Assembly (NCBI GenBank): GCA_965240325.2
Contig: OZ251222.1
Location: 248,001 to 312,000 of the forward strand
Reading direction: 5' to 3'
Source: Rebecca billardiae RCC1528
Lineage: Eukaryota > Protista > Haptophyta
DNA: 64,000 nucleotides
Below the pieces are notes generated by a model, which was not told the DNA's origin, did not search any database, and was given only the letters and a program-made list of their open reading frames with translations. Shown here piece after piece: positions 22,400 to 58,253 of the stretch. The stretch's first letter is position 1; each line of letters starts with the position of its first letter. The position numbers and the translations under genes are program-made.

Positions 22400-23816
22400 A
22401 TGGGGTACGGGGGTGGCGGGGGTGGCCGAGGCGGCACGCTCCCCCGCATCCGCTTCCACCCGGCGACTCGGCCGGACCGGCTGGTCGTCGACCCGAACCG
22501 CGTCACGAAGTACAAGCTCATCGGCGACGGCGCACGCGCCGAGGGCGCACACGGCGGCGCGGCCAGCGGCGCCTCTGGGGCCGCGATGGACAGCGCCGAG
22601 GCCGACAGCGCGGGGAACGGCGAGCTGAACCTCCCTCGCTCGTCCTGGCTCTTCCCCCCCGACGAGCTCGCGGCGATCTCGCGTTGGCGCGAGATGCGGC
22701 GCGTGGGCGCCGGTCTGAAGAACCTGGGCAACACGTGCTTCCTCAACTCGGCGCTGCAGTGCCTGACGTACACGCCGCCGCTCGCGAACGCGTGCGTGCA
22801 GGCGCTCCACTCGAAGCGCTGCGACGCCGCCGGCCTGTGCGTGTACTGCGAGGTCGAGAAGCACGTGTGCCGCGCGCTCTCGTCCGCGCAGCCGATCGCG
22901 CCGCACACGATCGTCCGGAACCTGCGCGTGATCGCGCGGCACTTCAAGGCGGGGCGGCAGGAGGACGCGCACGAGCTCACGCGGTACATGATGGACAAGA
23001 TGCAGGCCGCCGCGCTCCGGGCCGAAGGCCTCGGCGGCACGGGCGCCGGCGGCGCGCCCGGCCGAGCGCCGAGCGCGGCCGAGCACGCGCTCGGCCGCAC
23101 GACGCTGCTCGCGCAGGTGTTTGGAGGCCAGCTGCGCTCGCAGGTGGTGTGCGCGGGGTGCGGCGCGGCGTCGGACACTTTCGACCCGGTGATGGACCTC
23201 TCGCTCGAGCTGAACCGCGCCACGTCCGTCCACGCCGCGCTGCGCAAGTTCACCGCCGCCGAGGTGCTCGACGGGCGCAACGCGTACAAGTGCGGCGCGT
23301 GCGCCAAGCTCGGGCGCGCGCGCAAGCGGCTCACGGTGCACCGCCCGCCGCTCGTGCTCACGCTGCAGCTCAAGCGGTTCGGCTTCGGCTTCGGCGCGCG
23401 CGCGCGCGGCGGCAAGATCAGCGGCCACGTCGCCTTCGACGAGACCCTCGACCTCGCCCCGTACACCTCCGCCGGCCCGCGCGCGCCCGTGCCGTACTCG
23501 CTGTACGCCGTGCTGGTGCACGCGGGCGCGGGCGTGCACTCGGGCCACTACTACTGCTACGTGAAGGCGCCGTCGGGGGTGTGGTACCGCATGGACGACG
23601 ACCGCGTCGCGCAGGTGGGCCTCGGCTCCGTGCTCAAGGCGCACGCGTACATGCTCTTCTACATGCGCAGCGCCACGCCGCCGCCGGCAGCGGGCGCGCA
23701 CTCCCTCGCGCACGCCGAGCCCGCCGGGCCGGCGCCGCCGCCCGCGCCAGGGGCCGCCCAGCTGCGCGAGGCCGGGCCGCGCGAGGCCGACGGGCGCCGC
23801 GGTGCGGAGAGCGGCA

Positions 23817-23914
<98 letters not shown>

Positions 23915-23926
23915 TACGTGCCCGGA

Positions 23927-24005
<79 letters not shown>

Positions 24006-32518: not shown

Positions 32519-34071
32519 TGCCGAGCCGGGCCCAGCCAGTCGCTCAGTCGCAGCAGCCTCTGACTGCGTGCCGTGGCACCGCTGCTCGGAGAAAGTCTCG
32601 TCAGCGCATAAAGTACCGGAATCGGGCGTGCCGTGGGGCCCGTGCAGTAGCGGGCTAGCGGCCTGCGCGGAGCGAACTGCGAAGGCTGCGGCGCGGCCGT
32701 TACGGCGGCGCGGCGCGGTGCCGGGTCCGAGCGGGTCAGCCCACCGCGCCCGCCGCCGGGGCGGCCACGAGGCACGGCCACTCACGGGCCCGAGTGCCCG
32801 CGCGCGCGGCCGCGGATCCACTACTGGCACCGGTGTACTAACGGGCTCCAGCCAGTCCGAAGATGACTGAAGACAGTACCTCTGAAACCTGAAAGTCTGA
32901 AACCTGCGTCGTCCTGTCACCTGATGTGAATGCGGGCGTCACGGCGTGATTACACCGGGCCCGCCGTGCCCATATAGAGTAGGACCTGACAGGCGGCGCC
33001 GTCTCAGCGGAGTTCATCGCCGCCAGTGAGCCGCGGAGGCCAGGGTCCGAGCCGGAGTCGCGGAGCGGGCCCCGCCCGGCCCTATTGAAAGTAGAACATA
33101 GATATATATTAGATAATCAGCGACAGCCTGCGGGTCGCGCCGGCTAGCTAGCGCAGCTGCGCGACACGGGTCGATTTAAGAGTGTTCCACCGGTCACTCG
33201 TCAGCGGCCCGGTTAATCAATACTCGGCCGTCTGTGGCTGTCGCCACTCAGACTAGTCTACTACTCACTAGTAGCAAGTACGAAGTAGAGTTATCGGCGT
33301 CAGCTACACACAGAAGTCAGACAGGCGACAGCCACCGGGACTGTCCGGACTGGCCTGCCGACGGGGCGCAGTCTGAGTCTCGAGGGATCCGATCGTCTGA
33401 CGCCTGGCAAGAGTCAAGGCGCACTACTCGCACTAGCCTCGGACTACAAGGCATGCGGGACTGCCAAGGGCCTAATAACGACCCCTGGTGACAGGAGCGA
33501 AGGCCAGCTCCGTCAAAAGCACTCCAAACACGTCCGTCCGCAGCCGCCATCACGGCGACAGCCACAACCGTCGAAAGTCGTTCGGAGACTGATAAATTCT
33601 TGAGCAGTGAGATGCGATGAGAATTGGTATAGGATTCGAAGCGTTGGCCGATGGATGAACTGATGGGACGTGTCCACATTTCCTTCTTCGCGCGAGGGCG
33701 GGTAAAGCATTAAGCAACGATCCATAATGAAGAGGAGGAATCCAACCGGGGTCGGTCATTTCGCTCAGTGGCAAATGAGAGACTGCTTAAGGTGAGTTCC
33801 AAGAAAGGGCGCTCGCTTTGTCAACTAGACGCTTATGCTACCAGATTGTCATCAATGGTGTGGAATCGCACGGGGAACTTTGGGCGAAAGTGGACCTACG
33901 ACACGCCACGCCATTGGCTGATCATCACAAATCCGGAGTCCGGACGCGGCAGATCGCGAGCCCGGCTCCGTCTGGCAGCTTCGAGATCGGGAGCTCAACC
34001 CGGACGGCTGGACCCAGCCGCGTCAGAGATTGGATTTGTAGAGTGCAGGATCCATCTCTGACGAAACGCGC

Positions 34072-35175
34072 ATGAAAGCGATCACGTGCGTTGGCGTGGT
34101 GGTGCTTCAACCAAATAGACGCACTACGATGCTGCAGCCGCCTACCTCGAAGCCTGCACATCTCCCCGTGACCACCGTGCCCGCGCAGGGAGAGGATACG
34201 GTCCCCTTGCAGGACATGATCGACTCTCTGAACGACGACTGGTGGGTGCACTCCGTCGTCCCGCCGCAGAATGGGCGCCCGCGGGAGGTGAACCGCCCGC
34301 AGATGCCGGCCGATCAGTTGCGAATCGCACCCGGCCCGCCCAGCACGACGTGCCCCGTCCACTCGGCCGACCACGTATTGATCCAGCGGCCACGCGACTG
34401 CCAGGAGGAGTCGCAGCCCACGGCAAAGAAGCGGCGCTGCCAGTGGACCGGCGAGCTGCACGCCGCCTTCGAGGAGGCGGTGCGCAGAGCGGGCCCCAGG
34501 CCCACGCCGACGAGCGTGCACGCCGCACTCAACGTTAGCCACCTGAACCTCGACTTCGAGCTGACGGTGGGGATGGTGAAGTCCCACCTGCAGAAGTACA
34601 AGCTGGACTGCCTCTGCGCGGGGTCGGCCGGCACGGCCGCCCTCATCCCCGCCCCCGCCCCCGCCGCAGAGCCGCCCAAGCTGCGCGCCGCCGAGCGCGG
34701 CTCATCCTTCTCTCGAGCAGATTCGGAGCGCGACGGCCGCTGCAGCAGCGACAAGCGTTCGCGCGGCGAGCCGATCCTGATCACGCTGCTCGATGCGCAG
34801 GCGGCGATGGGGGTGCTCGTCCGCACCATCGGTGGCTATGCGCTCACCCTCGAATTCGAGAGTGACACAAACACACTCGTGCTGAAGGTCACGCCGCCGG
34901 CAATGTGCCCCGACCATCTCGCCGACTTCGGAATCACGACGCTGCCGCTCCTCGCCGACGCGAAGGTGAGCGCGGCGGGGATCGACGAGCTGAACTATGA
35001 GTTCACGCGCCGATGCGCGCTCTCGTGCACGCCGGCGTCGAGCTCACCCTCGGACTGGACGCAGCAGATGGTCTCTACCGGCGCAGGGGACAAGACCGTC
35101 CTCATCCTCATCCCCAAGCTCGATGGGCACTGCGTCCCGCCGGGCAGGCCCGCGGGCACGCCGCTCGTGTTGTGA
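34072..35175 (+). CDS. GARP/SHAQKYF-class Myb-like transcription factor
   Basis: KKRRCQWTGELHAAFEEAV...TPTSV...LTVGMVKSHLQKYKL. The start may be a downstream Met. Confidence 0.8.
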   Translation: MKAITCVGVVVLQPNRRTTMLQPPTSKPAHLPVTTVPAQGEDTVPLQDMIDSLNDDWWVHSVVPPQNGRPREVNRPQMPADQLRIAPGPPSTTCPVHSADHVLIQRPRDCQEESQPTAKKRRCQWTGELHAAFEEAVRRAGPRPTPTSVHAALNVSHLNLDFELTVGMVKSHLQKYKLDCLCAGSAGTAALIPAPAPAAEPPKLRAAERGSSFSRADSERDGRCSSDKRSRGEPILITLLDAQAAMGVLVRTIGGYALTLEFESDTNTLVLKVTPPAMCPDHLADFGITTLPLLADAKVSAAGIDELNYEFTRRCALSCTPASSSPSDWTQQMVSTGAGDKTVLILIPKLDGHCVPPGRPAGTPLVL

Positions 35176-36136: not shown

Positions 36137-36754
36137 GACGGCCGTCTGACATCCGGACCTGCACCCTCGCCCTCGCTCGGGGCACAGCAGGTCCATGCGA
36201 GCCGCGCAGCGCAGGTGGATCGCGCTCCAGCAGCTCAAGGCCGCGCTCAAGCCATTCGATCGCGGTTCAGGCTATGCTCTGCCACCAGCGCCGACTTCGT
36301 GTCGACGATCGGGCACTGCCGACGACGAATCAGGAGACCTGCGCCGTCCTACCTGTGTCGTTAAATCATAGAATGGGTCAGGCACCCGCAGCGATCTACG
36401 ATGGCCGCTGTCACGTCGGGGGCCGTCGTCAGCCGCTTGACTTCTCCACTGGCCTGACTAGGTGGCCCGCCGGAAAGCAACAGAAGGCGGCCTTCACGAT
36501 GACGGCACGAGTAGTTGGAGGTTGGCGGCAAATCCGCCGCGGGCACAGGGAGAATCCGTACCGCATGCACTCGCCTGAGCTGCCCGGTGTCGGTTGCGAC
36601 GGGCCGCCGCGCTGGGCCCGCGCGGCGCAGACAGCCGGCGACGCGCGGCGGCGGCGGCGCGGCACGGATCATCGGTTCCGATGGACAGTCAGGCCGATGC
36701 GGAGGCGGTCAAGGCTCGGTCGGTGGAGGGCGCCACCAGTAGCGGTACAGGCGC

Positions 36755-38170
36755 TCAGACGAATGAGAAGGGGACGAAGATGAGCGTCTCCTCGCCGTTG
36801 TCAGCGCGAGGGAACTCGGCAGCGCTGAGCTTCTTCTCCACGGCTGCGATCACCTCGGCGCGCAGCTTGGCCTCCGCAGCCGCCACGCCCTGGGCGGAAT
36901 CGCCTGCATCCGAGCCGACCAGCTCGGCGCGATCGGGCACGAGCGTGTCGGCGAGCACGCGCACGTCCTCCACTGCACCCGTGCTGCCACTCACGCGCAT
37001 GCGCATGTGCAGCACGCCGAGCATCCGCGCGCACTCGCCCGAGAGCTCCTCGTAGAGCGGCTCGAGCGCCTTGTCGAGCGCCGGCCCCGCCTGCTCGTCC
37101 GACAGCCCGCCTCGGAACGAGACCGACTCGGACGCGGTGAACCAGCCGTGGAGCACGAGCCGCGCCTGCGCCGGGTCACGCGTGCCGCGCACCTCGCGCA
37201 CGCCGTGCGGGATGCGCGGGTCAAAGACGGTGAGCCGGTTGAAGTGCGGCTCGATCTCGTCGAAGATCGTCGACTCCTCCAGCGACTCGCCTGGCTCGAA
37301 GGCGCGCCAGAAGTCGAGCACCGCGCGCGAGAGCAGCATCGTCTCGCCGCCCTCGAACTGGCGCTCTTCCCACTCGGTGAGGCTGAGCACGAACGCGAAT
37401 GGGCCGTGCCACGCGTCCGTGTGCAGCCCCTGCGAGTGCCCGTCCACGTAGTAGGAGAGCCACGGGGGGCTGATGCCGTCGCAGCCGAGCTCCTCCTGCG
37501 CGAACGCCGTGAGCGCCTCGCACAGCTGCGCGTACGCCTCCTCGCTGAAGTACTGCTCGGCGGGCGTGCGCATCAGGTTGTACTGCCCATACACGAACCA
37601 GTGGTTCCAGCAGAAGTTGCCCGACTCGGTGTTGCGCGGGTCGGCGAAGCGCTCCTCAAACACCTCGCGCAGCGAGCGCGCCTGCTCCGCGGGTAGGAAC
37701 TCGTCCTTGACGACCACGTGCTGCCCAACGCTCCCCTCCACGGGAAGGTCGTCGCTCTCGGTGGTGGGAGGCTCATCCTCCTCGCTGGTGCTCGAGACCG
37801 CCCCCTCGCCGCTGTCCGAGTCCGTTCCCGCGTCGTCGCTCGCGGCGGCACTCACGACGGCGGGCGGGTCGTCCGACGCCCCGGTCGCAGCCGAGGTCGA
37901 GGCTGTGTCGTCCGTGGCCTCGGTCGTAGCCGACGTCGAGGAGGTGTCGTCCGACGCCCCAGTCGCAGCCGACGTCGAGGAGGTGTCCTCAGACCCGAAC
38001 GTCGACGAGGGTGAGCTCGCACTCGCGTCCCCAAAGGTCGACGAGGCGCGCACGGCTACACGTGAGCGCGATGCGACGCCGGCGATCGGCACGCGCGAGG
38101 CTGGCCCCCACCCGGCCGCCACGGCCGCGAGCGCGGCGAGCAGCGCCGCTTGCAGCCAGCCACGCCCCAT
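36755..38170 (-). CDS. 2OG-Fe(II) oxygenase (prolyl-4-hydroxylase-like) with signal/transit peptide
   Basis: HxD (LHTD), FAFVLSL, FEGGET, distal His (IPHGV) and RLVLHGWF. Hydrophobic leader followed by RVAVRA. Confidence 0.8.
   Translation of the reverse strand: MGRGWLQAALLAALAAVAAGWGPASRVPIAGVASRSRVAVRASSTFGDASASSPSSTFGSEDTSSTSAATGASDDTSSTSATTEATDDTASTSAATGASDDPPAVVSAAASDDAGTDSDSGEGAVSSTSEEDEPPTTESDDLPVEGSVGQHVVVKDEFLPAEQARSLREVFEERFADPRNTESGNFCWNHWFVYGQYNLMRTPAEQYFSEEAYAQLCEALTAFAQEELGCDGISPPWLSYYVDGHSQGLHTDAWHGPFAFVLSLTEWEERQFEGGETMLLSRAVLDFWRAFEPGESLEESTIFDEIEPHFNRLTVFDPRIPHGVREVRGTRDPAQARLVLHGWFTASESVSFRGGLSDEQAGPALDKALEPLYEELSGECARMLGVLHMRMRVSGSTGAVEDVRVLADTLVPDRAELVGSDAGDSAQGVAAAEAKLRAEVIAAVEKKLSAAEFPRADNGEETLIFVPFSFV
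37868..37990 (-). repeat. Coding tandem repeat (~39-bp unit, DTSSTSAATGASD-like, about 3 copies)
   Basis: Repeated gtcgcagccgacgtcgaggaggtgtc-like units in the linker of the 2OG oxygenase. Confidence 0.7.
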
Positions 38171-38531
38171 CGGTGCCTAAGTAGAACGCGTTGGCGCGTT
38201 GCGGTTGCCGCCCGACCGCCGACGCGCCAGCGCCCGGTGGAATTTGAATTTAGCAAGTGATGATGGCATGATGCCCGGTGCGGCGGCGGCGCCTTGATCC
38301 GTCATCAACTCATCATCGTTGATGTCCGATTGCCGGCCGACTCGTCGAAAAAGAAAAGCAGCCTTTTTGCCTTTTTCTGATTTTCTCGCCACGCGCCCCC
38401 GCCCGCCAAATCGCGGATTCGCGGACGACAGACATCGTGGCGACGACCGCCCTCGTCTGTGTCGCGCGGCGAGGGGGCGCCGGCCGCGAGGCAGGGGACT
38501 GGACGGCTGCAGGCAGTGAGGGGAGATTCAG

Positions 38532-40170
38532 ATGGCCGCCCCATCGCCGCGCCCGGCCCACCCGGGCGGCGCGGTGCCAGCCGCGCACGGCAGCTCGCTT
38601 TCTCTCAAGGGTGCGCGTCTCAGCGGGCGCAACGCTGCGACGGCTGCGCGCGGCGCGCATCGCTGCGCCCGTTGCGGCTCGTCTGACCGTGCGCGTGGCG
38701 CCGCGCGCCGCGCGAACCGCAGTGATGCGACTCTGCAAGCCGTCGTTCTCGACCGAACTGCCCCTGCCCAACGATCCGGTGGCGCTGGGCGCGCGCACGC
38801 CGGGTGGCGCGAGTTCTGTCTCCGCGGCCGCGAGCCTCCCGCTCGCCACCTCCGCGTCGCTCACCCTCCCGCAGTCGTTCGGCAACATCTACCTCGGCGA
38901 GACGTTCTGCGCGTACGTCTCCGTGTGCAACCAGGCGGCCCACCTGCTCAACGGCCTCGGCCTGAAGGTGGAGGTGCAGACATCGAGCCAGCGCCAGCTG
39001 CTGCTCAACAACGCGCCGACCGGTCCGAGCGCGACGCTTGCGCCCGCCGGGCGCGCCGACGTGATCGTGCGGTACGAGCTGCGTGAGGTGGGCATCCACA
39101 TCCTGATCTGCTCGGCCTCGTACGTCGACGCCGACGGCGAGGCGCGCAACCTGCGCAAGTTCTTCAAGTTCCAGGTGCAGAACCCGCTTTCGATGAAGTC
39201 CAAGTCACACACACTCTCGGCCGGCACGCCAGACGAGGCGGTGATTGTCGAGACGCAGGTGCAGAACGCGACCGCGGGCGCGCTCCACCTGACCAGCGTG
39301 CGCTTCAGCCCCGCGCCCGGCCTCGCCGTGGACGACCTCAACCGGCTCGGCGAGAGCGTCGACCAGCTCGCGCGGCTCAAGCCGGGCGACGTGCAGCAGT
39401 ACATGTACCGGCTGCGCTGCGCGCCGTCTGCCTCGGCGGCCGCGCTCGCCGCCGCCGCCGCGCTCGGCCGCATGGAGGTGCACTGGCGCGGCCCGATGGG
39501 CGAGGGCGGACACTTGCAGAGCAACACCGTGCAGCGCCGCCAGCAGCCGCCGCGCGCGCTCGAGGTGACGCTTCTCGCCGTCGAGCTGCTCAGCGATGCG
39601 TCCGGCGACGCCGAGGCGGCCGAGACGCCCGAGGCGGCGGCCGGGCTGGCAGGCTGCCTCGCCGTGGCGTGCGAGACGCCGTTCGTGCTGCGCTGCCGCG
39701 TGACCAACCGGTCAGAGCGCGAGCAGGAGCTGAGCGTGAGCTGGGCGCAGCCATCCCCGCCTCCGCAGCAGCCTGGCGCGGCGCCGCCGGCCGTCGGTGC
39801 GGCCGCAGCCCCGCCGCCGCCGGCGAGCGTGCCTGCCGACCCGCGCGGCTCCGCGGTGCCTGAGCTCGTGTACACGGGCGTGATCGGCGCTGAGGTCGGC
39901 GTGCTGGCGCCCGGCGCCTCCACTGAGCTGCGGCTCGAGCTCGTGGCACTCGCGCCGGGCCTGCACAAGCTGAGCGGCCTCGTGCTCGTCGACCGGAGGG
40001 CGAATGTCTCGCATGAGGCGGGCGCCATCGGAGAGATCCTCGTGTTGAGCGGAGGCACCGCCGACCTCCCCGGTGGCGGGCACGTCTCGGCGGCGGCTGC
40101 AATGGCAGGAGATGTCCCGGACGCTGCTGCCAGCGGTGCCGGTGTGCCGCGGCTCGGTGTTGCGGCATGA
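38532..40170 (+). CDS. TRAPPC13: Trafficking protein particle complex subunit 13, join(38532..38610,38723..40170)
   Basis: The intron at 38611-38722 creates the conserved LSLKVMRLCKP. Also LPQSFGNIYLGETF, RKFFKFQVQNPL and WRGPMGEGGHLQS. Confidence 0.92.
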
Positions 40171-40593
40171 TGCCGCTATATTATGCCAGGCGCCGCGCGG
40201 CCCCGGCCGCGACAGCTACTACGACGATCTGGATGGAGCTAGTGGATTGAGAACAATGCCGATGGGCTCCGGCTTCGGTCCACCCCCCCCAGTCCGGTCA
40301 GTGGAGCGTTACATCTTGACACTGCAATCGGCGGGATCGCCGCCTCTGATGATGATCTACAATAGCTCCTAGCCCACCCCATCAGGCGGTCCGCCTCGGA
40401 CGCCATATAATCGGGCCAGATGCGGATCATCGCGTCCTATAAGCCACACCTGGCCAATAGGCGGTTCAGACTCTATTTTCTGTAACTAGATACCCAGTCC
40501 GGGTATCATTTTCGCATATGCATGCAGGTATCCGGAACGCTCCCGCACTGTGCTGAAATCTGAGTAAGGGACGGGTAATTGCATAGTAAAAAT

Positions 40594-41052
40594 GGCTCTG
40601 GCTCCGGTTGACCCCTGCCAGTCCGGTCATAGAAACCGGGCGTACCGAAAATGATCTTCGCATTCCTGCGGCCGAATGAACGCCCGAAGTGTCCCACAGG
40701 GCCCCAAGTAGGGTTGCTATGGATGGCCAATAAGTGCCCAGGGAGTGAAACTCAGTTTATGACTACTTCAGACTCTATTTTTCATAGCTATTTACCCAAT
40801 CCGGTGATACATTTCAAATAGCTACGGGTGCATCCGGATCGCTCCCGGACCGTGTTCTGACCAGAGTCTGAAATGGGTAAATACATAGTAAAAATAGAGT
40901 CTGAACTATGGAGGAAGTGCTTGTTGGCCCAATATCGCTCTGAAGTCATCATCTAGGCATCCATTGAGGTCCTCCTGTGCAGTTTTCACGAGTGACTTCA
41001 TGAAGGAGCTCACAGTGCCCGTCTCTGGCAGGGGTCAACCGAAGCCAGAGCC
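40594..41052. mobile_element. MITE-like element T, copy 1 (459 bp, 28-bp TIRs, apparent AAAT target-site duplication)
   Basis: TIR GGCTCTGGCTCCGGTTGACCCCTGCCAG / CTGGCAGGGGTCAACCGAAGCCAGAGCC with one mismatch. AAAT at 40590-93 and 41053-56. No coding capacity. Confidence 0.85.
40766..40906. mobile_element. MITE-like element M (141 bp, ~33-bp imperfect TIRs, TA flanks) inside T
   Basis: ttcagactctatttttcatagctatttaccca ... tgggtaaatacatagtaaaaatagagtctgaac, with TA on both sides. A second copy at 41597-41749 is also TA-flanked. Confidence 0.8.
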
Positions 41053-41416
41053 AAATAGAGTCTGAACCTATTGGGAGGTGGTCGGATGCGACATTTCTCG
41101 TTGAAGTCATCAATCGGGGGTCGGAAGGGACTCTGCTGCATGGTCCGCTTGGTTGACTTCGGCTCGGGGCCAAGACGTAACGGAGCTGGGGGGGGGGGTG
41201 GACCGGAGCCGGAGCCGATGAGTGATGCCGGCGTGAGTAGACGTGATTCGTCGGCTGATTCGCGTGGCGGCATCATCGCCGTGACGTCGTCGTTGTTGAT
41301 GATGGCTCAGCCTCATCCTGGCTCAGACGTCACTGGCAGGCACACCGTGGTATATCATATACTCGGATAGCACTTAGCAGTAGTCGTCGTCGTGACGATG
41401 CGGCCGATGGCTACTC

Positions 41417-41961
41417 GGCTCTGGCTTCGTTCGACCCCTGCCAGAGACGGGCACTGTGAGCTCCTTCATGAAGTCACTCGTGAAATAAACTGCACAGGAG
41501 GACCTCAATGACAATGGATGCCTAGCTAGATGATGACTTCAGACGAGCGATAGTCCGGGGCCAACAAGCACTACTTATAATTATAATTCCTCTATAGTTC
41601 AGACTCTATTTTACTATGTATTTACGACCCATTTCGGACTCTGGTCAGAACACGGTCCGGGAGCGATCCGGATGCATACGTACTACGTAGCTATTGGAAA
41701 TATGTCACTCGGACTGGGTAAATAGCTATGCGGAAAATAGAGTCTGAACTAGTCACAAACTCGGATGTTCACACCCTGGGCCACTTATTGGCCATCCATA
41801 GCAACCCCACTTCGCACTTGGGGGCCCTGTGGCGGACACTTCGGGCGCTCATTCGGCCGCGCGCAGGAATGCGATGATCATTTTCGGTACGCCCGGTTTC
41901 TAAATTCTATGACCGGACTCGGGGCAGGGGTCCGCAACCGGAGCCGCAGGCCCAGAGCGCC
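41417..41961. mobile_element. MITE-like element T, copy 2 (inverted, expanded by many micro-insertions)
   Basis: Colinear reverse complement of 40594-41052 along its whole length, including the nested M. Confidence 0.88.
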
Positions 41962-42161
41962 GCACTCGGTCTGTCGAGACTGATGCAGTGATAACTCATG
42001 ACGATCACTACTATATATATATATATATATATATTATAATATATAGCATTGATGATACCGTCTGAATCGGCGAGGCTGGCAGCAGTCTCATCAAGCAGTC
42101 TCTGAGTCGACAGTCGTCATCGATAATTAATCGGCCGATATAAGACGACATCGTCCGACTG

Positions 42162-45100
42162 TCACTGTTCAGCGCAGCTACGACACATGATTCGTCGGTG
42201 TCGGCCCAGCAGGCCAGCTCTCCCGCCGGCAGCGTCACCGGCGTCGCCGGGCTCGGCCTCGGCGGACGGAGCCTGTGCGCAGCGCGCCTCGTCGCGCTCG
42301 GCCATATATGCCTGGACTCCTGGAGGCGCGCCCCGCTGCCGGAGGGCGCGCCACTCGCCCGGCGTGCGCAAGCCGTCGGTCAGCTGCGCCAGCGGCACCC
42401 GCACCGCCGCCATCGTGCAGTCGTTCACACCGTACCCGAGCATCAGCTCATACTGAGGCGGTGCTGAGGCGGTGGGCGCCGACGTGGAGGCGGAGCCGGC
42501 GGCGGCACTGCCATCGGCGGGGCCGCGGCTGCTGTCGGGCCGACCGGCCTCGGGTGTGCCCGCCCCGCGTGCGCCGGCGTCGGGTGCGGCTGGCAGCAGC
42601 TGCAGCGAGAGCACGCGCTGGATGGTCTCGCACTCAGCGCTCTGCGCCAAGGAGGCCGCGCCCGTCTGCGGCGCTGCGCTCCACGGCCTCGCCGCCGCCG
42701 AGCGCAGCGCGGGCAGGCACCACTCCGGCCCCACGCGGCGCAGCGCGAACGGCGGGCGCGCGTCCACCGTGAAGGCGAGGTGCGTGTAGTGGTGGCCATC
42801 CTTGGCCCAGCTGCGGCCCAGCTGCGCGCGCGCAAGCGCGGAGAGATTGGCGGCGCGCTGCTCGCCGCCACCAACCTCGCCGGCACCGTCAGCGCCCTCG
42901 CCGCCGAGCGCTGCGGCGGGTGGCGGCTGTGCCGCCAGTGTGGGCGAGGGCCGGTCCAGCCGGCCGACGCAGAGCAGCTCCTCGCCACCAGGCAGCGGCA
43001 CCGGGCCGGCGGACAGGCGCACGCGCGACGACCACGCCGCGGGCAGCGACGCCCACGCGCGCGCCGCGCCGTCGAGCCGTGCCGCGCCCTCGGCGCTCAG
43101 GCCCGCACCGCCGCCGCCGCCGCCGCCCGGCGCGCCGCCCGGCGCCAGCGGCACGAGTGGCAGCGCGCGCTCGGGCAGCAGGCTGGCCAAGCGCAGCTCG
43201 GCGCGGCCTGGGTGCCGCCGGACGCGCGCGTCGACGCGCACGGCGAGCGGCGCCGGCGCCAGCGTCCACAGCAGGTGCAGCGCGCCGCCGTGCCAGAAGG
43301 GCAGCTGGTGGCGCTCGCTGAGCCCGCTGGACAGTCCGGTGCCCCGGGCCACGGCCGCAGAGACGTTCAGGTACCCGCCGCGCGTGTCGGCGAGCAGGCG
43401 CGCGCGCAGCGCGCACGCGGAGCCGTCGGCGGCCAGCGGCGCGTCCTTGACGCACTCCAGACCCAGCGGCGCCACGGACACCACCGCCGTCTGCTCGGCG
43501 CTCCCCCACGGCCCGCTCTGCCGCAGGCCGCACGTGCACGCGCCCCACAGCCCGCCGCCGCCGCCGCCGCCGCCGTCGGCGTCGGGCTCGCGGAAGAGGC
43601 GGCACTCCTTGAGAGAACGGCAGCGGCGCGGCAGCAGCACTGGCCCGCGCGCCAGCTCCACCAGCGACGCGTCGAGCAGCGCGACGGCGCACGCGTCCGT
43701 CTTGCCGAGCTGCGAGGCGGGGCCGCGCGCCGCCCAGCCCGCGTGCCGCGGCGCGCGCAGCGTGCCGCCCGCGCGCGCACACTGGCCCTCGCTCGACGTG
43801 AAGAGAGACACGAACGCCGCGGTGGGCACGCCGAGCGCGGCCGCCTCCTCCAGCCGCAGCGACGCGTAAGCGGCGTTCCAGCCGTCGAAGCGCGGCGTGG
43901 GCTCGGCCGGGCCCGCCGACGTGCGCAGCACGAGCGGCGCGCGGCACGGCGGGCCGCCGCCGGCACCACCGCCACCGCCGCCGCCCGGCTCGTCGCCGGC
44001 GTTGCTGCCGGCCGCGCCTGGCCGCGCGCCGGGCTCACACAGGGCGAGCGGCGGGCACAGCGCGAGCTCGCCCGCCTCGAGTGGGCCCACGCCGTACAGG
44101 GACGAGTCTTTGGGTGGCGGGGACGAGGGAGGCGATGCGCGTTGCTTCGAGGCACCGTCACCCTGGGCTTTCTCCGCTGTGGCCTCGGTCTTGTTCGCCG
44201 TAGCCTCGGTCGCGCTCGCCGTGGCGTTCACTGTGCCGCGGTGCGCCTTTTGACGCGCCGCCGCTTGGCCGCGCGGGGGCGTGCAGTGGTGGTCGATCAG
44301 GCACGTGCGGCCGGTCCACGCCTGCAGCATCGGCGTACAGCAGTCCCACGGGAACGGGGAGCCGTACGTCTTCTTAAATGCCCTCTCCTGCTTTGCGCTC
44401 GTGGGTCTCATCTCCTTGCAGTTGAACGCGCCGCCCAGCGCGAGCACGCGCGCGCCCGTCGCGCGGAGCGAGCGCCACAGCGGCGGCTGGTCCATCACCT
44501 CGATGGCGGACGAGGTCGGGCCGCACCGGCTCTTGGCGTACGGGAAGCTCAGCCCCTCCGTGCACGGCGCGCTCGCGAACGAGCGCACCGCGCCCTCGTA
44601 CTCCTCCGCCCAGCGCGCCCACAGCCGGTCTGTTCTTGGCGTGCGCCGCCAGAACAGGACGCCACCGTTCACGCGCACGTCGGCGAGGCAGCCGGCAAAG
44701 GAGGGCTTTTCGCCGTCGGGGGTATGGCAGCCGAAGCCGTAGCCCGCAACGTCGTACGCGCCGCCGAGCATCGCCTCGACCGCGAGCAGCACCGCGCGCG
44801 CGTTGCCGCAGAAGTGCGTGTCCGTGTCCACAAAGAGAGAGAAGTCGTACGGCGAGCGCATGATCGCAGCGATCTTGTGCCGGCGCTCGCCGAGGAGCGT
44901 GCGGTTGGGCAGCAGCGAGAGGGGCTCAGGGACGTGGCCCGACAGCACGGCGAGCTCCACGCCGCGCCACGCCGCTGTCCGGCCCATGCTGTTGAGCACG
45001 TCCACGCCCTCGGCCGACGTGAAGAGCGTCACGGCCACGCCCGCCTTGCGCGCTTCGAGCGCGGCGGCGAACGCCTTGCGCACGTAGCCCTCTTCGCCGA

Positions 45101-45215
45101 CCGCCGCAAAGACGACTCCATGCGACGTTTTCCGCAGCGCGATCGGGATCGCGCCGCACCGCAGCCAGCACAGCCCGAGCAGCAGCAGCACACCGCGCGA
45201 GTGGTGGGCCAGCAT
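42162..45215 (-). CDS. Secretory-pathway glycosyltransferase: GT-A/DxD domain plus C-terminal beta-propeller-like carbohydrate-active domain
   Basis: Signal/anchor VLLLLGLCWL. KIAAIMRSPYDFSLFVDTDTHFC, VNGGVLFWR and DQPPLWRSL in the first domain. C-terminal YTHLAFTVDARPPF...EWCLP...LMLGYGVNDC. Confidence 0.7.
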   Translation of the reverse strand: MLAHHSRGVLLLLGLCWLRCGAIPIALRKTSHGVVFAAVGEEGYVRKAFAAALEARKAGVAVTLFTSAEGVDVLNSMGRTAAWRGVELAVLSGHVPEPLSLLPNRTLLGERRHKIAAIMRSPYDFSLFVDTDTHFCGNARAVLLAVEAMLGGAYDVAGYGFGCHTPDGEKPSFAGCLADVRVNGGVLFWRRTPRTDRLWARWAEEYEGAVRSFASAPCTEGLSFPYAKSRCGPTSSAIEVMDQPPLWRSLRATGARVLALGGAFNCKEMRPTSAKQERAFKKTYGSPFPWDCCTPMLQAWTGRTCLIDHHCTPPRGQAAARQKAHRGTVNATASATEATANKTEATAEKAQGDGASKQRASPPSSPPPKDSSLYGVGPLEAGELALCPPLALCEPGARPGAAGSNAGDEPGGGGGGGAGGGPPCRAPLVLRTSAGPAEPTPRFDGWNAAYASLRLEEAAALGVPTAAFVSLFTSSEGQCARAGGTLRAPRHAGWAARGPASQLGKTDACAVALLDASLVELARGPVLLPRRCRSLKECRLFREPDADGGGGGGGGLWGACTCGLRQSGPWGSAEQTAVVSVAPLGLECVKDAPLAADGSACALRARLLADTRGGYLNVSAAVARGTGLSSGLSERHQLPFWHGGALHLLWTLAPAPLAVRVDARVRRHPGRAELRLASLLPERALPLVPLAPGGAPGGGGGGGAGLSAEGAARLDGAARAWASLPAAWSSRVRLSAGPVPLPGGEELLCVGRLDRPSPTLAAQPPPAAALGGEGADGAGEVGGGEQRAANLSALARAQLGRSWAKDGHHYTHLAFTVDARPPFALRRVGPEWCLPALRSAAARPWSAAPQTGAASLAQSAECETIQRVLSLQLLPAAPDAGARGAGTPEAGRPDSSRGPADGSAAAGSASTSAPTASAPPQYELMLGYGVNDCTMAAVRVPLAQLTDGLRTPGEWRALRQRGAPPGVQAYMAERDEARCAQAPSAEAEPGDAGDAAGGRAGLLGRHRRIMCRSCAEQ

Positions 45216-45385
45216 CGTTTTCGCGACCAAGCATTTCGTCGATATCAAATCGTCATTACCTCCGTACGTAGTCATCAATTCATTACAGTTAAACTGTACT
45301 AAGAATAAGAGACGCACAGTATCGATCGGCGGAGGGCTCCAGCAAGTATGTACCTCTGCAGCGTTGGGGGGCGCCTGCCTCGGCA

Positions 45386-47137
45386 ATGGCGGCGAGCATG
45401 CACCGCCGCGCCGGCGGTGCGAGGGCGCATCCCGCTCGATCGCCCGCTCGCCGCCACGCGCGCGTCGCCCTCGCGCTCGCACTTCTCGCCGCCGTCGACG
45501 GTGTCGCGCTCGCGCCCGCCCGCCGCTGGCGGCTGTACACGTACGACGTGCCGCTCGAGGCGCTTGGCGTGCCCGCGCCCGCCGCCGAGCGCTACCGCGC
45601 GCGCGTGCGCGAGGGGCCGACGCGCGCGCCGTGGGACGTGGGTGGCGTCGCGCAATCGCTCGCGCGCGAGCTGCCGCGCGTGATGCCCGCGTGGGCCCCG
45701 CCGCGCCCTCCGCGGCCGGGCGTCAGCTGGTCCGACCCCGGGCGGGTGCTGTACTTCCTGCCGGTCGCGCCGTTCGTGCTGTGCATGAGCACAGCAGAGC
45801 ACCGCAACGCCTCGTTCGTCGACACGAACGGGATGGCAAAGGGCATGTTCCCGTGGCTCACGGGCCACCTCGCCATGGGCGCCGCCTCCAAGCGCTGCGA
45901 GCTCGACGCGCGCCGGCTCTGCCCCGCGTACGCGGCCGTTCTGGAGTGGCTGGTGGCGCAGCCGAGCTGGGCGGGGCGCGAGCACCTGCACGTGGTGCCC
46001 GCCTCCTTCTCGGCGGACGTGCCGCGCGCGGCGTTCGCGTGCGCCGAGCGCCGCGCCATCCCCGAGGCGCAGCGCCCCGTGCTCGCGCGCCTCGCCCGCT
46101 CCATCCTCCTGTCGATGGAGGGCCGCACGTGGGCGTGGCGCGCGGACGTGGCCGCGGGCCGGCTGGTGCATCTGCCCTACTACGTGCCGCCCGAGCACTA
46201 CCTGCTCTCCGCGCGCGCAGAGGAGCTGCCCTCGCGCAAGCCCTCGCGCGTCGCGCTGGTGACGGTGCAGCCCAAGGCGTGCCATCGCTTCGACGACCCG
46301 ACGCGGCCAGACGCGCTCCACTGCGCCACCTCCGCCGCCGCCCTTGCCGCGATCGACAAAGGGCTCGGCACGCCGCCCGCGGACGTGCCGCCCGCCGACG
46401 TGCGCGCCGCGCTCGCGCTCGCCGTCAAGCACGCGACCACCGGCCGCCCCGTGCACTATGGCCTGCGCAACATGCTGCGCAAGCCGAGCGCGGCGGTCGC
46501 CTCCTTCGGCGCAGAGTACCGCCGCGCCACGTTCACGCTCGTCCCACCGGGCGACACGCTCACCTCCTCGCGCATACACGGCGCACTCGCCGCGCTCTCG
46601 ATCCCGGTGTTCCTCGTGCCGCTCGGCGTGCTGCCGTTCCGGCACACCGTGCCGTGGGAGGCGCTCTCCGTGCAGCTCTCGCCCGCCGCCGTCCTGAAGT
46701 ACGCCGCCGAGTGGGAGCGTCTCGGCGGCGGCGGCGGCGGCGGGGCCCACGGCACGGGCGCAGAGGCCTGCGGGGGAGAGCGGCTGGAGAGCGAGTGCGC
46801 GCGCGCGCGCGCGCTGCACCTCGAGCGGCACAACCCGCTCCGCGCCCTCGAGCGCCTCGAGCGCGAGGCACCGGAGCGCGTGGCGCGCATGCAGTCGCTG
46901 CTCGCGCGCCACCGCTGGAGCGTGCTGTACCACAACGGCTCGGAGGCGCTCAAAGCCGTCGTGCCGTTCGACGAGGCGGACGCCGAGGCGCGTGGCGGCG
47001 TGCCGCCGAGCGAGTGGCCCTCCGCAGCGAGGAGCCTCGCCGCCGAGCTCGTGATCGCTGGCGAGCGCCGGCTGCGCACGCACGCCGATGACGGCGCCAT
47101 GCATCAGCCCAAGGCGGCGCCGGGCGCGGTGCGCTGA
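45386..47137 (+). CDS. Exostosin family (GT47) glycosyltransferase
   Basis: N-terminal TM anchor, LYTYDVP, WAGREHLHV and ATFTLVPPGDTLTSSRIHGALAALSIPV...LPF...PW. Confidence 0.85.
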   Translation: MAASMHRRAGGARAHPARSPARRHARVALALALLAAVDGVALAPARRWRLYTYDVPLEALGVPAPAAERYRARVREGPTRAPWDVGGVAQSLARELPRVMPAWAPPRPPRPGVSWSDPGRVLYFLPVAPFVLCMSTAEHRNASFVDTNGMAKGMFPWLTGHLAMGAASKRCELDARRLCPAYAAVLEWLVAQPSWAGREHLHVVPASFSADVPRAAFACAERRAIPEAQRPVLARLARSILLSMEGRTWAWRADVAAGRLVHLPYYVPPEHYLLSARAEELPSRKPSRVALVTVQPKACHRFDDPTRPDALHCATSAAALAAIDKGLGTPPADVPPADVRAALALAVKHATTGRPVHYGLRNMLRKPSAAVASFGAEYRRATFTLVPPGDTLTSSRIHGALAALSIPVFLVPLGVLPFRHTVPWEALSVQLSPAAVLKYAAEWERLGGGGGGGAHGTGAEACGGERLESECARARALHLERHNPLRALERLEREAPERVARMQSLLARHRWSVLYHNGSEALKAVVPFDEADAEARGGVPPSEWPSAARSLAAELVIAGERRLRTHADDGAMHQPKAAPGAVR

Positions 47138-48255: not shown

Positions 48256-48629
48256 TGATCACTGCCGAGCCGCCGATGCCGCGGATGCGGCGGATGCCCA
48301 CGGCTGCGGCCCGTGTGACCATGCAGTGCCTCCCCAACTTCTCCGTGCAGCCCCGAGATGTCGCGGGCTCTGCGCGCGATCCATGGCAATCTGGTGAGGT
48401 GGGGCGCCGACTCGCGCAGCAGTGTGCCCTTCGATTGACGAGTTCGTCGTGTCATCCGGGCGAGTACGACGGCGGCTTCAGTCAATCTGAAAACGTGACT
48501 GGCTACTGACTCAGTACGAGTGCGCCAACGAGTCCTTCAGAGTTCAGTACTCCTTGAAGCGGCCCGCATGACCGGCTTGCTGTTACATATCAGCTTCGGA
48601 ACTGATATATGAACTATACCGTTTGTAAC

Positions 48630-48630
<1 letters not shown>

Positions 48631-48660
<30 letters not shown>

Positions 48661-48680
48661 GGACTCACAGAGAGAGAGAG
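48631..48680. repeat. (AG)n microsatellite followed by an AT-rich tract (48697-48740)
   Basis: Two AG runs read directly from the sequence. Confidence 0.9.
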
Positions 48681-49463
48681 TTATAGTACGACGTATCATT
48701 ATAATTATTATTATAATAAATAAAATTATTTAATCATTATTCGAGCCGAGAGCCCGTTTCAAGAGACAAAGCAGTCGTCCGACTCCGAGCAGATCGGCCA
48801 CGGAGCAGAAGACAGACGTCGCGAAGTGCCATCCGAGAACCGACTGTACTTACCGTGAACTGATGCGATAACTACGTTACTACGACCGCAGGCTCGTGGC
48901 AGCTGACTAATCTACAGCCGGACCGCGAGGCCCAGCCGTATCCGGTCCAGCGGCCCGGGGCGCCCGGGAGCTGCGTCCGGGGCGCACTCTGAGGCATGAA
49001 TGTTGAAACTGCCGCCGCGTACGTACGCGCGCACTCGGCACGCGGCACGCGGCAACAGGCGCCCGGTCGCCACACAAAGATGTGGCTCTGAGAGTACGGA
49101 TCGAACTCGAGTAGGATCGTAGCAGAGACAGGTACGGAGACGAGGCACACGGAGACTAAGATACCGGTTACTCGTTAACAGTGATACTCGAGACTGAATC
49201 GGTCTGATCACTGATGGCCCGTCGCGGGCCCGCTCGCCGGCCGCGCGAGTCAGAACCCTCCCGATCATGCTCCTCAGAGCCGCCCGGATGCCACCACTTG
49301 CCGCCAGCATCATCAGTGAGTGCTGAGCTTAATACTTGATGAAAACGTCAATAATAAACTAGAAAACTACCGGCACTAGCACTACCGCGCCGATAGGCTC
49401 GGATGCTACGGGGTACGGGCGCTCCGTCGGCGCGGGCAGTTGGCCGCCGCTGCCATTGGCACC

Positions 49464-50114
49464 CTAGCTGACATCAGCGGGCACGTCCGCAGGCTTCCCC
49501 ACGGAGAGCGCGATCGCGGCCAGCTCAGCGGCGAACGTATTGCGATGCGTCCGCGCCTTCGAGCGCATCGCTGCGACCGCCTCGAAGGCGGCCGCGAGCG
49601 ACTCGACCTCTGTGTGGAGTAGCAGGTAGGCGATCAGCCCGGCTGGCCCTCGGTTGATGCCCTGGTGGCAGTGCACCCAGACGCCCTTCCCTTCGGCACG
49701 CGCGTGCGCGATCCGCGCTGCAGATTTGCTCAGATGGCGCACGTTGCGCTCAAAGTCACCGCCGCGCCTGTCGCGCAGGTTGCCCTCTCCGTCTTGCAGT
49801 CGGAATATGTGCGACCCCTCCTTCTCGGCGACAAAGGACGCGTCGTCGAGGCGGCAGTCCACCTCGACGGAATCCTCCGCCTCGACGGGCTTGTCGTCCA
49901 CGCCGCTCAGCCAGATCTGCGCCAGCGGGTCGCCCCCTGTGTGCATTGGCGGAGGCGCGTCGGCGAGCACCGCGCCGTCGTGCAGGCGGCGCCCGGTCGT
50001 GGACGCAAACTTGATCGGCGAGAGCTCGCGGCCTTCGGACGGGTTGGATGGCGCAGATCCACGCGCCTGACGCTCGGCGGCGAGCTGCCGCAGGAGCGCG
50101 TTCGAGTCCTCCAT
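49464..50114 (-). CDS. Small dual-specificity/PTP-like phosphatase
   Basis: VWVHCHQGINRG (HCX5R), LIAYLL and AFEAVAAMR...NTFAAEL. Confidence 0.85.
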   Translation of the reverse strand: MEDSNALLRQLAAERQARGSAPSNPSEGRELSPIKFASTTGRRLHDGAVLADAPPPMHTGGDPLAQIWLSGVDDKPVEAEDSVEVDCRLDDASFVAEKEGSHIFRLQDGEGNLRDRRGGDFERNVRHLSKSAARIAHARAEGKGVWVHCHQGINRGPAGLIAYLLLHTEVESLAAAFEAVAAMRSKARTHRNTFAAELAAIALSVGKPADVPADVS

Positions 50115-55374: not shown

Positions 55375-57562
55375 GGGTGTCGGCATCCGTGTCCGCGCCG
55401 CCGCGCGTCGCCGCGCCGCGCGGCCAGTTGCAGCTGTTCGGAGCGGGCGTGTACGCAAGGCGCGCGTCGGCCGGCAGCCGCTGCCCGGCGCGCACGGCCT
55501 GCCCGGCGCTCGCAATCCGGAGAGCGCCGCGCGCGGGCAGCCGGACAATCTCGATCTGGAGATCGAGATCGAGATCGGCGGGCGCGGCGCGCGCGCCGCC
55601 GAGCGTGAGGTCCACGCCTGCCGAGTCCTCGCGCAGCTCGGTGCGCCCGCCCGGCGCCTGCAGCGGGTTGAGCACGCGCACGGACACGCGCGCGTCCGCG
55701 GCCGCGCGCGCGCCCCCGCTGTCCACCAGCCGGAAGCTGAAGCCGTCTGCACACAGCGCGCGCCGACCGTCGCGCGCGGCCGAGCACGCCGCGTCCTCGC
55801 CGCGCGACGAGCGGTGCGGCGCGAAGGTGTACACGACGCAGATCGGCATGCCGGCGGGGCACGGGCCGTCGGCGCCGCCGGGCGGCGCGCTCGCGCCGGG
55901 CCGCGACGCCGGCACGCGCGGCGCGCTCGGCAGCTCCGCCTCCTGCAGCGGCGGCAACAGCTGGCCGGAGCGCCAGACGCGCAGCGTACCGAACACGGGC
56001 AGCCCGGTGATCTCGGCGTGCACCGCGTCGCCCTCGGGGTCGGTGGCGGGGAAGAGCACGGCGGTGGGCGTCTCGCCGAGCGCGTCGAGCGCCGCGCGCG
56101 ACGCTGTCGGCGGGTCGTTCACCGGCGAGACAGCGAGGGCGATGCGCGCGGCCGCGCCGCCGCGCTCGGCGCCGCCTCCGTCGCCCGCGCCCTCGGCGGC
56201 GCCGAGCGCGGCGCCGTACTCGAAGCTGGCGTACGTGCGGAGCTCGCCCTCCGGCGGCAGCGCCTCGCCCGGGCGCATCGGCACGTTCTCCGAGTTGCTG
56301 TCCGGGTCCGGCACGAACCGCACGACGCCGCGCACATCGCCGCCGCCGCGTGCCGCGCCCGAGCGCTGGGCGGCGCGGAGCGCGCTCGCGAGCAGCGCAG
56401 CGCCGGGCGGGCGCAGCACATACGGCAGCTGCGCGGGGTGGATGGGCGTGGGCTCCGTCGCGGCGGCGTCCCACAGCGTGCCCCGCTCGGGCAGCGCGGT
56501 GACGCGCACGACGACCGCCTCCGCCTCCGAGCCGTCCTCCCCGCGCTGCGCCTCGTCGAACGCGAGCGCCGCTCTGAGCGGAATGACGAACCCCTGCTCG
56601 TCCTCGGCGAGCTGCAGCCGCGCGCCCGCGACTGTGGGCGCGGAGCGCGGGAGGAAGGCGCGGAGGTTGGCGCCGACCGCCTCCGGCTCGAGCGCCGCGC
56701 CGTGCAGCGCGAGCAGCAGCACCTCGCCCTCCCACGCCGCGCCGCCCCGCGCCGCCCCGCCCACCTCGAGCCGGTGGTCCGAGCGCCACGCGCTCAGCAG
56801 CGGGTGGATCGGGAACGGCACGGCCAGCTCGTACCCGACGAGCCACAGGGGCACGGTGCTCGGGCTGGCGGGCGGCGAGCGCGCCGGCCGGCGCGTGACG
56901 TACAAGCTCGCGTCGCCCTCCGCGGGCGCGACGAAGACGACGTGCACGGTGTCAGCGGATGCGTCGGCGTCTGCGCGCGCGCCCGCGCCCGCGTCGGCAC
57001 CCGCGCCCGCACCGTCGTCCGCTGGCGGCGCGAGCGCGGCGCGCGCGCTCGCGCGGTAGCAGCCGCGGCCGGTGGGCGTATCGTACGCCGCGGCCGCCTC
57101 GACAATGAGCTCGCCGCCGCGCTGCGCCACGCGCAGCGCCGTCTCGCCGCGCTCGCACTCGGCCGCACCGCCCGCACCCGACGCGCTGCCGAGCCGCACG
57201 ATCGTCGCCTCCGCGTCGGCGGGCGGCGCGGGCGGCGGGCGGATCCAGAGCTCGACGGAGAAGCCGCGTTTCGAATCCGCCAGCGCGCGCACGAGCGCGC
57301 CGCTCGTGGCCTCCGAGCGCAGCGCATGCGTGCGCCCGACGCGCACGCCGACATGTGGCGGGCACATGGCCGCGTCCGCTCGGCCGCCGTCGCTGCCGTG
57401 CGCGAGGAGCCGGCCGAGGAGCGCGGCAGGCCGCTCGTCGGCGAAGGCACCCTGCGCGCAGTCCGACTGGCGGAACGCGTACTCCACCACGCCCGGCCGC
57501 GGCCTGCCCGTGGCCGCGGCGAGTACGCCCCAGCCGCTGAGCAGCAGGAAAGCGGCGGCCAT
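53642..57562 (-). CDS. Type I membrane protein with LamG/ConA-like domain and cadherin-like/Ig (VxPVNDPP) repeats
   Basis: Signal peptide, FSVELWIRP...HVVFV...WEGEV, VSPVNDPP, DPEGDA and FSFRLVD. TM segment IRLGLVALVCLCALQ followed by a Pro/Ala-rich tail. Confidence 0.7.
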
Positions 57563-58253
57563 GGTTTGGTTCAACTGGGGCCTTGGGCGGCTGCCGGCTG
57601 GGCGCTGCTTTTTGGCCAAATAAAGCCCAAAATACATATGGAAGCATCAAAATCATATAGTAGATCGCTGGCCAAATAATAACTTTTGGGCGACATCAAG
57701 ACAGAAGTCACGATGGCGGACCCCGTTCGCCATGCGCGTCGGGCCGCCACTCCGCCAGCCGACTGCGGCTTTCAGAGCGATCTACGGCGACCATACTTCT
57801 ACCATACTTCTACTGTCTGAGTCCCTTTAGCAGCATCAAATATCAATCCTGCGTCATCCGGATTCGGTCGCGTCGGGCCGCGTCCGCCGAGCCCGAGCCC
57901 GAGTCCTCGGGCCCGCTCAAATACTATACGACTCAGTCGACTGACGACGAATCGTCGCGTGAGACGGGTCACGCTCACCGGCCACCGGGTCACGGCCACG
58001 GGACTTGACGGGAGTCATTGACATTGCCATTGGCGCCCCGCCCGGCCGGCGCGCCGCCGCGGACTCGGGCTGCAAGCCGCAAGGCGGCCCGACGGACACG
58101 GTATGGCACCGTGATTCGTACTAGTGTTGTCCCGCTGTATCTTATGGCGCGGAGAATCACGGAGCCGTCGCGTCGGGCAGCAAATATCGCCGCCGCCCTC
58201 ACTCGGTTCAGAGGACGACAGACCAGGAGGCGGTCCTGGGCGTGGCGGCGCGA

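Follow-up and report, generated by a model that had tools for sequence, protein, structure and literature searches.

A miniature transposon in the haptophyte Rebecca billardiae RCC1528 has been lengthened by many small insertions. The element, here named T, was examined in a 64,000-nucleotide (nt) stretch of contig OZ251222.1 (assembly GCA_965240325.2, positions 248,001 to 312,000 of the forward strand), which we call the window and whose own numbering is used throughout. Two copies of T lie in a nest of miniature transposons, and one of them, copy 2, gained about 88 nt through at least 20 separate small insertions along its whole length, including one of its terminal inverted repeats (TIRs), and lost almost nothing. 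Three independent comparisons show that the extra bases are derived insertions in copy 2. We hold it evenly balanced whether these insertions are scars of fill-in and end joining at staggered breaks, left by a process general to non-coding DNA. To our knowledge, the spectra of small insertions and deletions (indels) are deletion-biased in nearly all organisms studied, and indels are far rarer than substitutions. In contrast, this one polarised locus in a compact algal genome of about 72% GC has some 20 insertions but no more than one deletion and only a handful of substitutions.

The T element is a miniature inverted-repeat transposable element (MITE), given its TIRs, its target duplications, its several copies, its small size and its lack of a transposase gene. 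It measures 459 bp, with 28-bp TIRs reading GGCTCTGGCTYCGGTTGACCCCTGCCAG and 4-bp target duplications, and the longest open reading frame (ORF) overlapping the nest (40200-42160) spans 99 amino acids (aa). The two copies stand in opposite orientations 352 bp apart. No third copy was found in the window, and additional copies are present among contigs of a public sequencing run, X1. The TIRs of copy 1 (40593-40621 and 41025-41053, 28-29 nt) are 96.6% complementary. In copy 2 the left TIR (41417-41444) is nearly intact and the right terminal region (about 41905-41963) is interrupted by at least four insertions, and since that terminus carries insertions the right boundary of copy 2 is an estimate. 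An empty site for copy 1 is provided by X1 record 2, which joins 40589 to 41053 and skips 463 nt, with four letters that fit both sides.

Copy 1 (40594-41052) was aligned with gaps to the reverse complement of copy 2 (41417-41963) under four gap-penalty settings, which gave 437-440 matches and 18-21 substitutions. The gaps that lengthen copy 2 number 20-23, total 88 nt and range in size from 1 to 15 nt, and this outcome is stable across gap penalties. Only one gap lengthens copy 1, a single base within an A run that is the sole site where copy 2 is shorter, and a 20:1 split differs sharply from an even one (P = 2e-5). The inverted-repeat arms at 40984-41058/41411-41485, 40823-40878/41627-41682 and 40630-40670/41862-41902 are collinear, with an offset that grows from one pair to the next. 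An initial reading of the DNA, made from the letters alone (the sequence-only reading), had noticed one-sided micro-insertions accompanied by few substitutions, and these counts bear it out. The examples that it cited are all present (caatgAcaatg, ctagctag, gaCga, acGac, acttCGCactt, ttctaAAttcta, aaaTaaa and gccGCAGgcc).

The polarity of these events was approached in three ways. The first compares the right TIR of copy 2, whose end reads ...GGCGCTCTGGGCCTGCGGCTCCGGTTGCGGACCCCTGCCCCGAGTCC, with five other TIRs, namely the left TIR of copy 2 and the two TIRs each of copy 1 and of an outer T-like element. The GC, the block of about 8 nt, the GCG and the CCG of the right TIR of copy 2 are missing from all five. 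The second uses a further element, M, which is nested in both T copies and whose end motif GTTCAGACTCTATTTT has 6 matches in the window versus 0 expected. A separate M-like element that serves as an outgroup is without the CC/CG, the TA-TAC-TA complex and the GTC carried by the nested M of copy 2. The third comes from the X1 contigs. Record 5 (379 nt) aligns to copy 1 at 40643-40955 (313 nt) with 0 gaps, where copy 2 has about 14 insertions, and record 6 is an exact match to 40926-41003, where copy 2 has 5. Of the 10 bases at which record 5 differs from copy 1, 8 are those of copy 2. Record 5 thus has the length of copy 1 and the bases of copy 2, and therefore is not simply the sister of copy 1. 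Elsewhere among the T copies of X1 we count 5 private insertions (CG, CC, CTGAT, CTG and T) and 0 private deletions inside T. The sequence-only reading had allowed that the family consensus might match copy 2; the opposite was found, with the TIRs, the M outgroup and the X1 copies all sharing the shorter state of copy 1. The one-sided gain that it described is thereby upheld, as the 20-23 gaps set against a single 1-nt gap are polarised as insertions in copy 2.

To characterize the inserted bases, we curated 20 events (79 nt in total) and compared them with a random-insertion null. Eight of the 20 include a duplication of 2 nt or more, versus 2.6 under the null (P = 0.003), and 4 include one of 4 nt or more, versus 0.1-0.24 (P < 1e-4). 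The clear cases are TAGAA-TT-TAGAA, CATTG-T-CATTG, AAGTG-CG-AAGTG, CTAG-CTAG, GCG-C-GCG, tc-G-tc, gt-C-gt and tt-A-tt. The other 12 events are not duplications and consist mostly of additions of 1-3 nt that contain GC or CpG (CG, CG, GCG, CCG, CGG, CC(G) and single bases), together with a palindromic +7 replacement of GG by TAGTACGTA and one AT-rich 15-mer. Duplications are thus a significant minority of the events in copy 2. The earlier view that most insertions are short direct duplications with 0-2 extra bases holds for this subset, which exceeds chance, and fails for the majority.

The added bases also have a distinct composition. Through the insertions the CpG count rises from 20 to 36 (+16), compared with 25 when the same bases are inserted in shuffled order (P < 2e-4), and palindromes of at least 6 nt rise from 8 to 20 versus a null of 8.9 (P < 2e-4). 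Examples in copy 2 are CTACGTAG, TACGTA, AATTATAATT, CTAGCTAG and GCGCGC, and 3 of the 12 extra palindromes are ancestral ones lost from copy 1 by substitution. Direct copies and new palindromes are therefore both in excess, and the short GC-rich inserts are not assignable to any template. Where the duplication is 2 nt long, the filler base is complementary to its neighbour in 4 of 4 cases (tcGtc, gtCgt and ttAtt in copy 2, and ggCgg at 40459, which belongs to the left TIR of the separate M-like element rather than to copy 2). Simple slippage was considered and rejected as a source, as it cannot account for filler or for palindromic additions.

The same motifs occur outside the nest. In an exploratory test we counted two-copy repeats only, using dinucleotide-preserving shuffles, in 9.4 kb of low-GC, non-coding islands elsewhere in the window (for example 33053-34253, 38167-38462, 48355-49514 and 57483-57993). 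For periods 5-12, we count 173 direct repeats of at least 5 nt that occur in just two copies, versus 73.6 expected (z = 10.6), and the excess extends to periods 7 and 8, for which codon structure gives no reason. Duplications of 5 nt with 1 or 2 nt of filler number 25 and 20 versus 8, and those of 6 nt with 0, 1 or 2 nt of filler number 12, 10 and 10 versus 2. The classes 3+0, 4+0, 4+3 and 2+1 (duplication plus filler) are likewise over-represented. For the pentamer form XY-Z-XY, cases with Z complementary to a neighbouring base number 282 versus 202 (z = 5.9), or 243 versus 168 outside the target, and those with a non-complementary Z number 197 versus 213 expected. The complementary excess is spread across GC-only, AT-only and mixed pentamers, and high-GC coding DNA, taken as a control, has the reverse pattern for the XY-Z-XY classes. 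In duplications of 5-8 nt the complementarity of the filler does not exceed chance (0.41-0.47 versus 0.43-0.45). Because the same motifs are found in other non-coding stretches, and because other copies of the family are clean, the evidence argues for an insertion process general to non-coding DNA rather than one directed at repeats.

In the reading that we favour, each event would have been left by a small staggered break or by a pair of nicks lying close together. Fill-in of the overhangs would produce the direct duplication, a few untemplated or fold-back-templated bases might be added as filler, and the ends would be closed by non-homologous end joining (NHEJ) without resection. Such a process would act across the non-coding DNA of the genome without being aimed at repeats, and would be fast relative to point substitution. 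No flanking bases are lost at the joints of copy 2, save for the 1-nt difference in the A run.

Several known systems resemble what we describe. Fill-in of staggered double-strand breaks followed by NHEJ yields small tandem duplications (Schimmel et al. 2021, PMC8355091), and these share with copy 2 short insertions that copy adjacent sequence, flanks that are kept and, sometimes, extra bases at the joint. The sequence-only reading had proposed staggered-break fill-in with untemplated additions, and this established route, together with a duplication-plus-filler subset that beats chance, lends some support to that part of the proposal; the 12 events without a duplication do not fit it. The present insertions differ in outnumbering deletions by about 20:1 and in matching or exceeding the substitutions on the same branch. 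They also differ in that their duplications are 2-5 nt long, more than half of the events are non-duplicative, and the fillers are CpG-rich or complementary to a flank. Human short insertions, reportedly treated by Messer and Arndt in 2007, and the ‘patch-mediated’ insertions in rice that Vaughn and Bennetzen are said to have described in 2014, are comparable systems. Topoisomerase II is reportedly linked to de novo duplications of 2-4 bp, in work attributed to Stantial et al. in 2020 and Boot et al. in 2022. Such events are likewise short and come from a fixed stagger that is filled in and then joined by NHEJ, whereas in our window the most enriched class is 5-6 nt plus filler and nothing ties the sites to this enzyme. 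Polymerase-theta end joining is reported to give locally templated insertions with mixed templated and untemplated filler (PMC4490562, PMC4032859 and PMC4912351). The likeness to copy 2 lies in the local direct and inverted templated additions and in the mixed filler. However, its scars typically combine a deletion that has junctional microhomology with an insertion, and copy 2 is without deletions. Polymerase-theta joints were rejected as the main source, since there are no deletions on the branch of copy 2.

A different origin for the same features would be excision footprints, in which cut-and-paste elements repeatedly entered and left copy 2, each visit leaving a target-site duplication and a few palindromic (P) or untemplated (N) bases from opened hairpins, as might be expected of hAT, Transib/RAG or Mutator-like elements. 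We consider this unlikely, although it is the main rival. For hAT, Transib and RAG, both the formation of hairpins on the DNA next to the element and footprints from end joining have been documented (PMC5499845). Hairpin-transposon footprints and V(D)J coding joints resemble our events in the kept duplication split by a few bases, in the complementary, P-like filler and in the GC-rich additions. The duplications have transposon-like sizes, at 5 nt (TAGAA-TT, CATTG-T and AAGTG-CG), 4 nt (CTAG), 3 nt and 2 nt. Furthermore, all four 2-nt cases have a filler complementary to the neighbour, TAGAA-TT fits a 2-nt P addition, and the complementary-filler class is enriched across the window while its non-complementary counterpart is not. 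However, at least 8 entries into a single element of 459 bp, while copy 1 and X1 records 5 and 6 received none, would be an extreme and unprecedented density. Duplication lengths of 2-6 nt would require several superfamilies. T itself makes 4-bp duplications, and the events in copy 2 have duplications of 2, 3, 4 and 5 nt. The filler of the 5-8-nt duplications has no P excess, 12 of the 20 events are without any duplication, and no scar site is seen with an occupied allele. The density, the spread of sizes, the non-duplicative events and the negative test on long duplications all count against excision footprints as the sole cause.

It is important to note that the two branches are uneven. Substitutions were polarised within 40623-41003 using the X1 copies, and in this interval 9 private substitutions and a single indel of 1 nt fall on the branch of copy 1, compared with 7 private substitutions and about 18 insertions on that of copy 2 (Fisher P = 0.0017). 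Five of the 7 substitutions private to copy 2 fall within 4 nt of an insertion, and copy 2 minus its insertions is nearly identical to the family consensus. This asymmetry also fits a burst that affected copy 2 and perhaps X1 record 4. In one form of burst, a polymerase prone to errors and template switching would have resynthesised copy 2 once, perhaps in the course of gap repair, of break-induced replication or of the transposition itself, and most insertions would have arisen together. We regard such a one-off event as improbable, despite several features that it would explain. Just 2 private substitutions in copy 2 are not adjacent to an insertion, and the ratio of indels to substitutions is sharply unequal between the branches. 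The load also seems all-or-none (0 gaps in 313 nt for record 5 and 4 gaps in 102 nt for record 4), and the insertion-adjacent substitutions and palindromic replacements resemble complex single events. Polymerase theta is known to mix untemplated, fold-back and trans-templated addition (PMC4912351). However, the enrichment of the same motifs in unrelated non-coding islands favours a dispersed process, polymerase-theta joints usually carry deletions and none is present here, and some 20 pure insertions, spread evenly over 0.5 kb, are not the product of any known repair pathway. At this single locus, both a steady process and a burst fit the asymmetry.

We see very little probability in the reversed polarity, by which the length of copy 2 would be ancestral and copy 1 and the X1 copies would form a subfamily shortened by microhomology-mediated deletions. 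Any duplication-plus-filler insertion also reads as a deletion between short direct repeats, an unrooted tree of three copies places the events of 40643-41003 only on the branch of copy 2, and one state at 40766 is common to copy 1 and X1 record 5. Against this, the five TIRs and the M-like outgroup root at least 7-8 events as insertions, 12 events have just 0-1 nt of microhomology, and record 5 shares the length of copy 1 yet has the bases of copy 2 at 8 of 10 sites. Deletion by microhomology in copy 1 was accordingly rejected, as the outgroups disagree for the 7-8 or more rooted events and the explanation is unparsimonious for the remainder.

Slightly less credible again is a defence aimed at repeats, comparable to repeat-induced point mutation (RIP) in fungi, that would scramble duplicated DNA by insertions. 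The affected sequence is a repeat, one TIR needed for mobility is destroyed, and the insertions add CpGs. As in RIP, one repeat copy is heavily mutated in the case of copy 2. RIP differs in making C-to-T changes in all duplicated copies, whereas here there are insertions in one copy only, and the substitutions between copy 1 and copy 2 have neither a RIP-like transition excess nor a C-to-T excess. Neither the partner copy, 352 bp away, nor other family members are affected. The suggestion in the sequence-only reading of a repeat-inactivating mechanism distinct from RIP is not sustained, since copy 1 and X1 records 5 and 6 are without insertions and the motifs also occur in non-repeat islands. 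The least probable account is that the assembly or its consensus is in error at the insertions, in copy 2 alone. The interval 41417-41963 is without read-level support, and repeats are where polishing fails. However, there are insertions of 6, 7, 8 and 15 nt in a non-homopolymer context, the events are structured as duplications and palindromes in one copy only, and, as indirect evidence, the adjacent 3,942 bp (36352-40293, ending at the edge of the nest) are identical to Logan contig L001, an independent assembly from another run. Run ERR14847148 evidently derives from the organism of the window.

Several considerations weigh against our favoured reading of staggered-break scars. Simple fill-in accounts for under half of the events. 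A steady background process fits the uneven branches only if the differences of copy 1 are inherited subfamily states. The window-wide counts are exploratory, and incipient trinucleotide repeats could contribute to them. The control loci are small, with a 1.44-fold excess on 3.3 kb of Emiliania huxleyi and only 1.6 kb of a metagenome contig of 72% GC. Copy 2 is covered by no reads or independent contigs, and no X1 contig falls on it even at 80% likeness. Run X1, which contained 9% of the sampled words in one run search, has contigs that cover only repeat-derived parts within 40205-41215 and neither flanking gene, and a run search with 9.9 kb including both genes listed no run. X1 has no depth on the flanking genes, and it may represent a sample of low coverage or mixed origin, or else a close relative.

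Beyond this locus, it is possible, and we offer it tentatively, that the non-coding DNA of this haptophyte genome undergoes a pervasive, essentially insertion-only process of small mutation that is faster than substitution. Such a process would create duplications of 2-6 nt with complementary or CpG-rich filler, scars resembling V(D)J joints that might come from a staggered-cutting or hairpin-forming nuclease (RAG/Transib-like, another transposase or a host enzyme) and be closed by end joining with an N-adding polymerase. If true, the intergenic sequence of this lineage would be largely built of repair scars. A genome-wide extent would make this a clear natural case of insertion-driven sequence turnover, would help to explain how the intergenic DNA of the lineage is made and scrambled, and would bear on the aligning, dating and annotating of repeats in these genomes. 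The pattern in copy 2 also points to an unusual enzymology of break making or end joining. This kind of mutation is already known. Its extreme dominance and density of insertions, its CpG-rich and complementary fillers and its likely spread in non-coding DNA are features for which we found no description in the literature.

Table. Positions of the nested elements, their target sites and the two flanking genes (window numbering).
Feature	Position	Strand	Remarks
T copy 1	40594-41052	-	459 bp, the family consensus length
T copy 2	41417-41963	+	547 bp; about 20-23 small insertions (88 nt) by alignment
Target-site duplication AAAT of copy 1	40590-40593 and 41053-41056	.	read from sequence
Putative target-site duplication ACTC of copy 2	41413-41416 and 41964-41967	.	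read from sequence
M element nested in T copy 1	40766-40906	+	TIR GTTCAGACTCTATTTT; motif search and alignment
Same nested M element in T copy 2	41597-41749	-	longer by CC/CG, TA-TAC-TA complex, GTC
Separate M-like element (outgroup)	40464-40589	+	split by T copy 1; other end resumes at 41053-41067
Outer T-like element, left TIR	40262-40300	+	partner 41191-41222; arms 93% complementary over 29 nt
TRAPPC13 gene	38437-40170	+	Pfam TRAPPC13_N, _M and _C domains, E = 9e-38 to 5e-15; 3' end adjoins the nest
Convergent gene, no assigned function	42162-45482	-	third-codon-position GC 0.88 in frame

The nest appears to have been built by successive landings. The outer T-like element encloses the M-like element and T copy 1, which, at consensus length, would have landed within the M-like element, and copy 2 would have landed separately, 352 bp off and in the opposite orientation. 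A scan of metagenomes with a T-specific 22-mer and with the two-TIR pattern of M gave no match. The TIRs of the outer element differ in homopolymer length (C8 at 40284-40291 and G11 at 41186-41196), and the X1 contigs vary there too. The ends of the M-like element (40452-40470 and 41062-41079) differ by a 3-nt gg-C-gg insertion that is unpolarised (CCAATAGG[CGG]TTCAGAC versus CCAATAGGTTCAGAC). The TIR of T itself (40594-40607, partner 41039-41052) holds GGCTC-T-GGCTC, a 5-nt duplication with 1 nt of filler and thus the same motif class as the later insertions of copy 2.

The nest forms a low-GC stretch between the 3' ends of two convergent genes, with the GC content of about 72% over the window falling to 56% in 40001-42000. 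For comparison, the genome of Diacronema lutheri (Pavlovales) has a GC content of 73.25% (PMC8379373). The closest named relatives of the left-hand gene product, TRAPPC13, are from haptophytes (Phaeocystis, Calcidiscus, Chrysotila and Emiliania). The right-hand gene is a minus-strand ORF of 1,037-1,106 aa with a strong coding signal and several poly-Gly/Ala tracts, and its product has no Pfam match and no relatives detected in protein database searches. A database lookup of two candidate full-length products of this gene and of two ORFs in copy 2 found none on record. An imperfect palindromic (TA)n microsatellite (42012-42047) separates T copy 2 from the stop codon of this gene.

The window has two further repeats. 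A long array at 23746-24111, in which a 135-nt unit recurs in 23 overlapping copies with 9-, 12- and 15-nt spacing, probably encodes an amino-acid repeat. A GC-rich inverted repeat (3115-3476 and 3729-4098) has arms of about 360 bp that are 92% identical and differ by few indels, including a 7-nt insertion of the TGTC-TCA-TGTC type and a 2-nt GC difference. Finally, a contig from a lagoon metagenome (ENA ERZ28548095, 21.4 kb, 72% GC) encodes a TRAPPC13 that is 38% identical to that of the window, which suggests that another very GC-rich, haptophyte-like lineage is represented in the lagoon sample.

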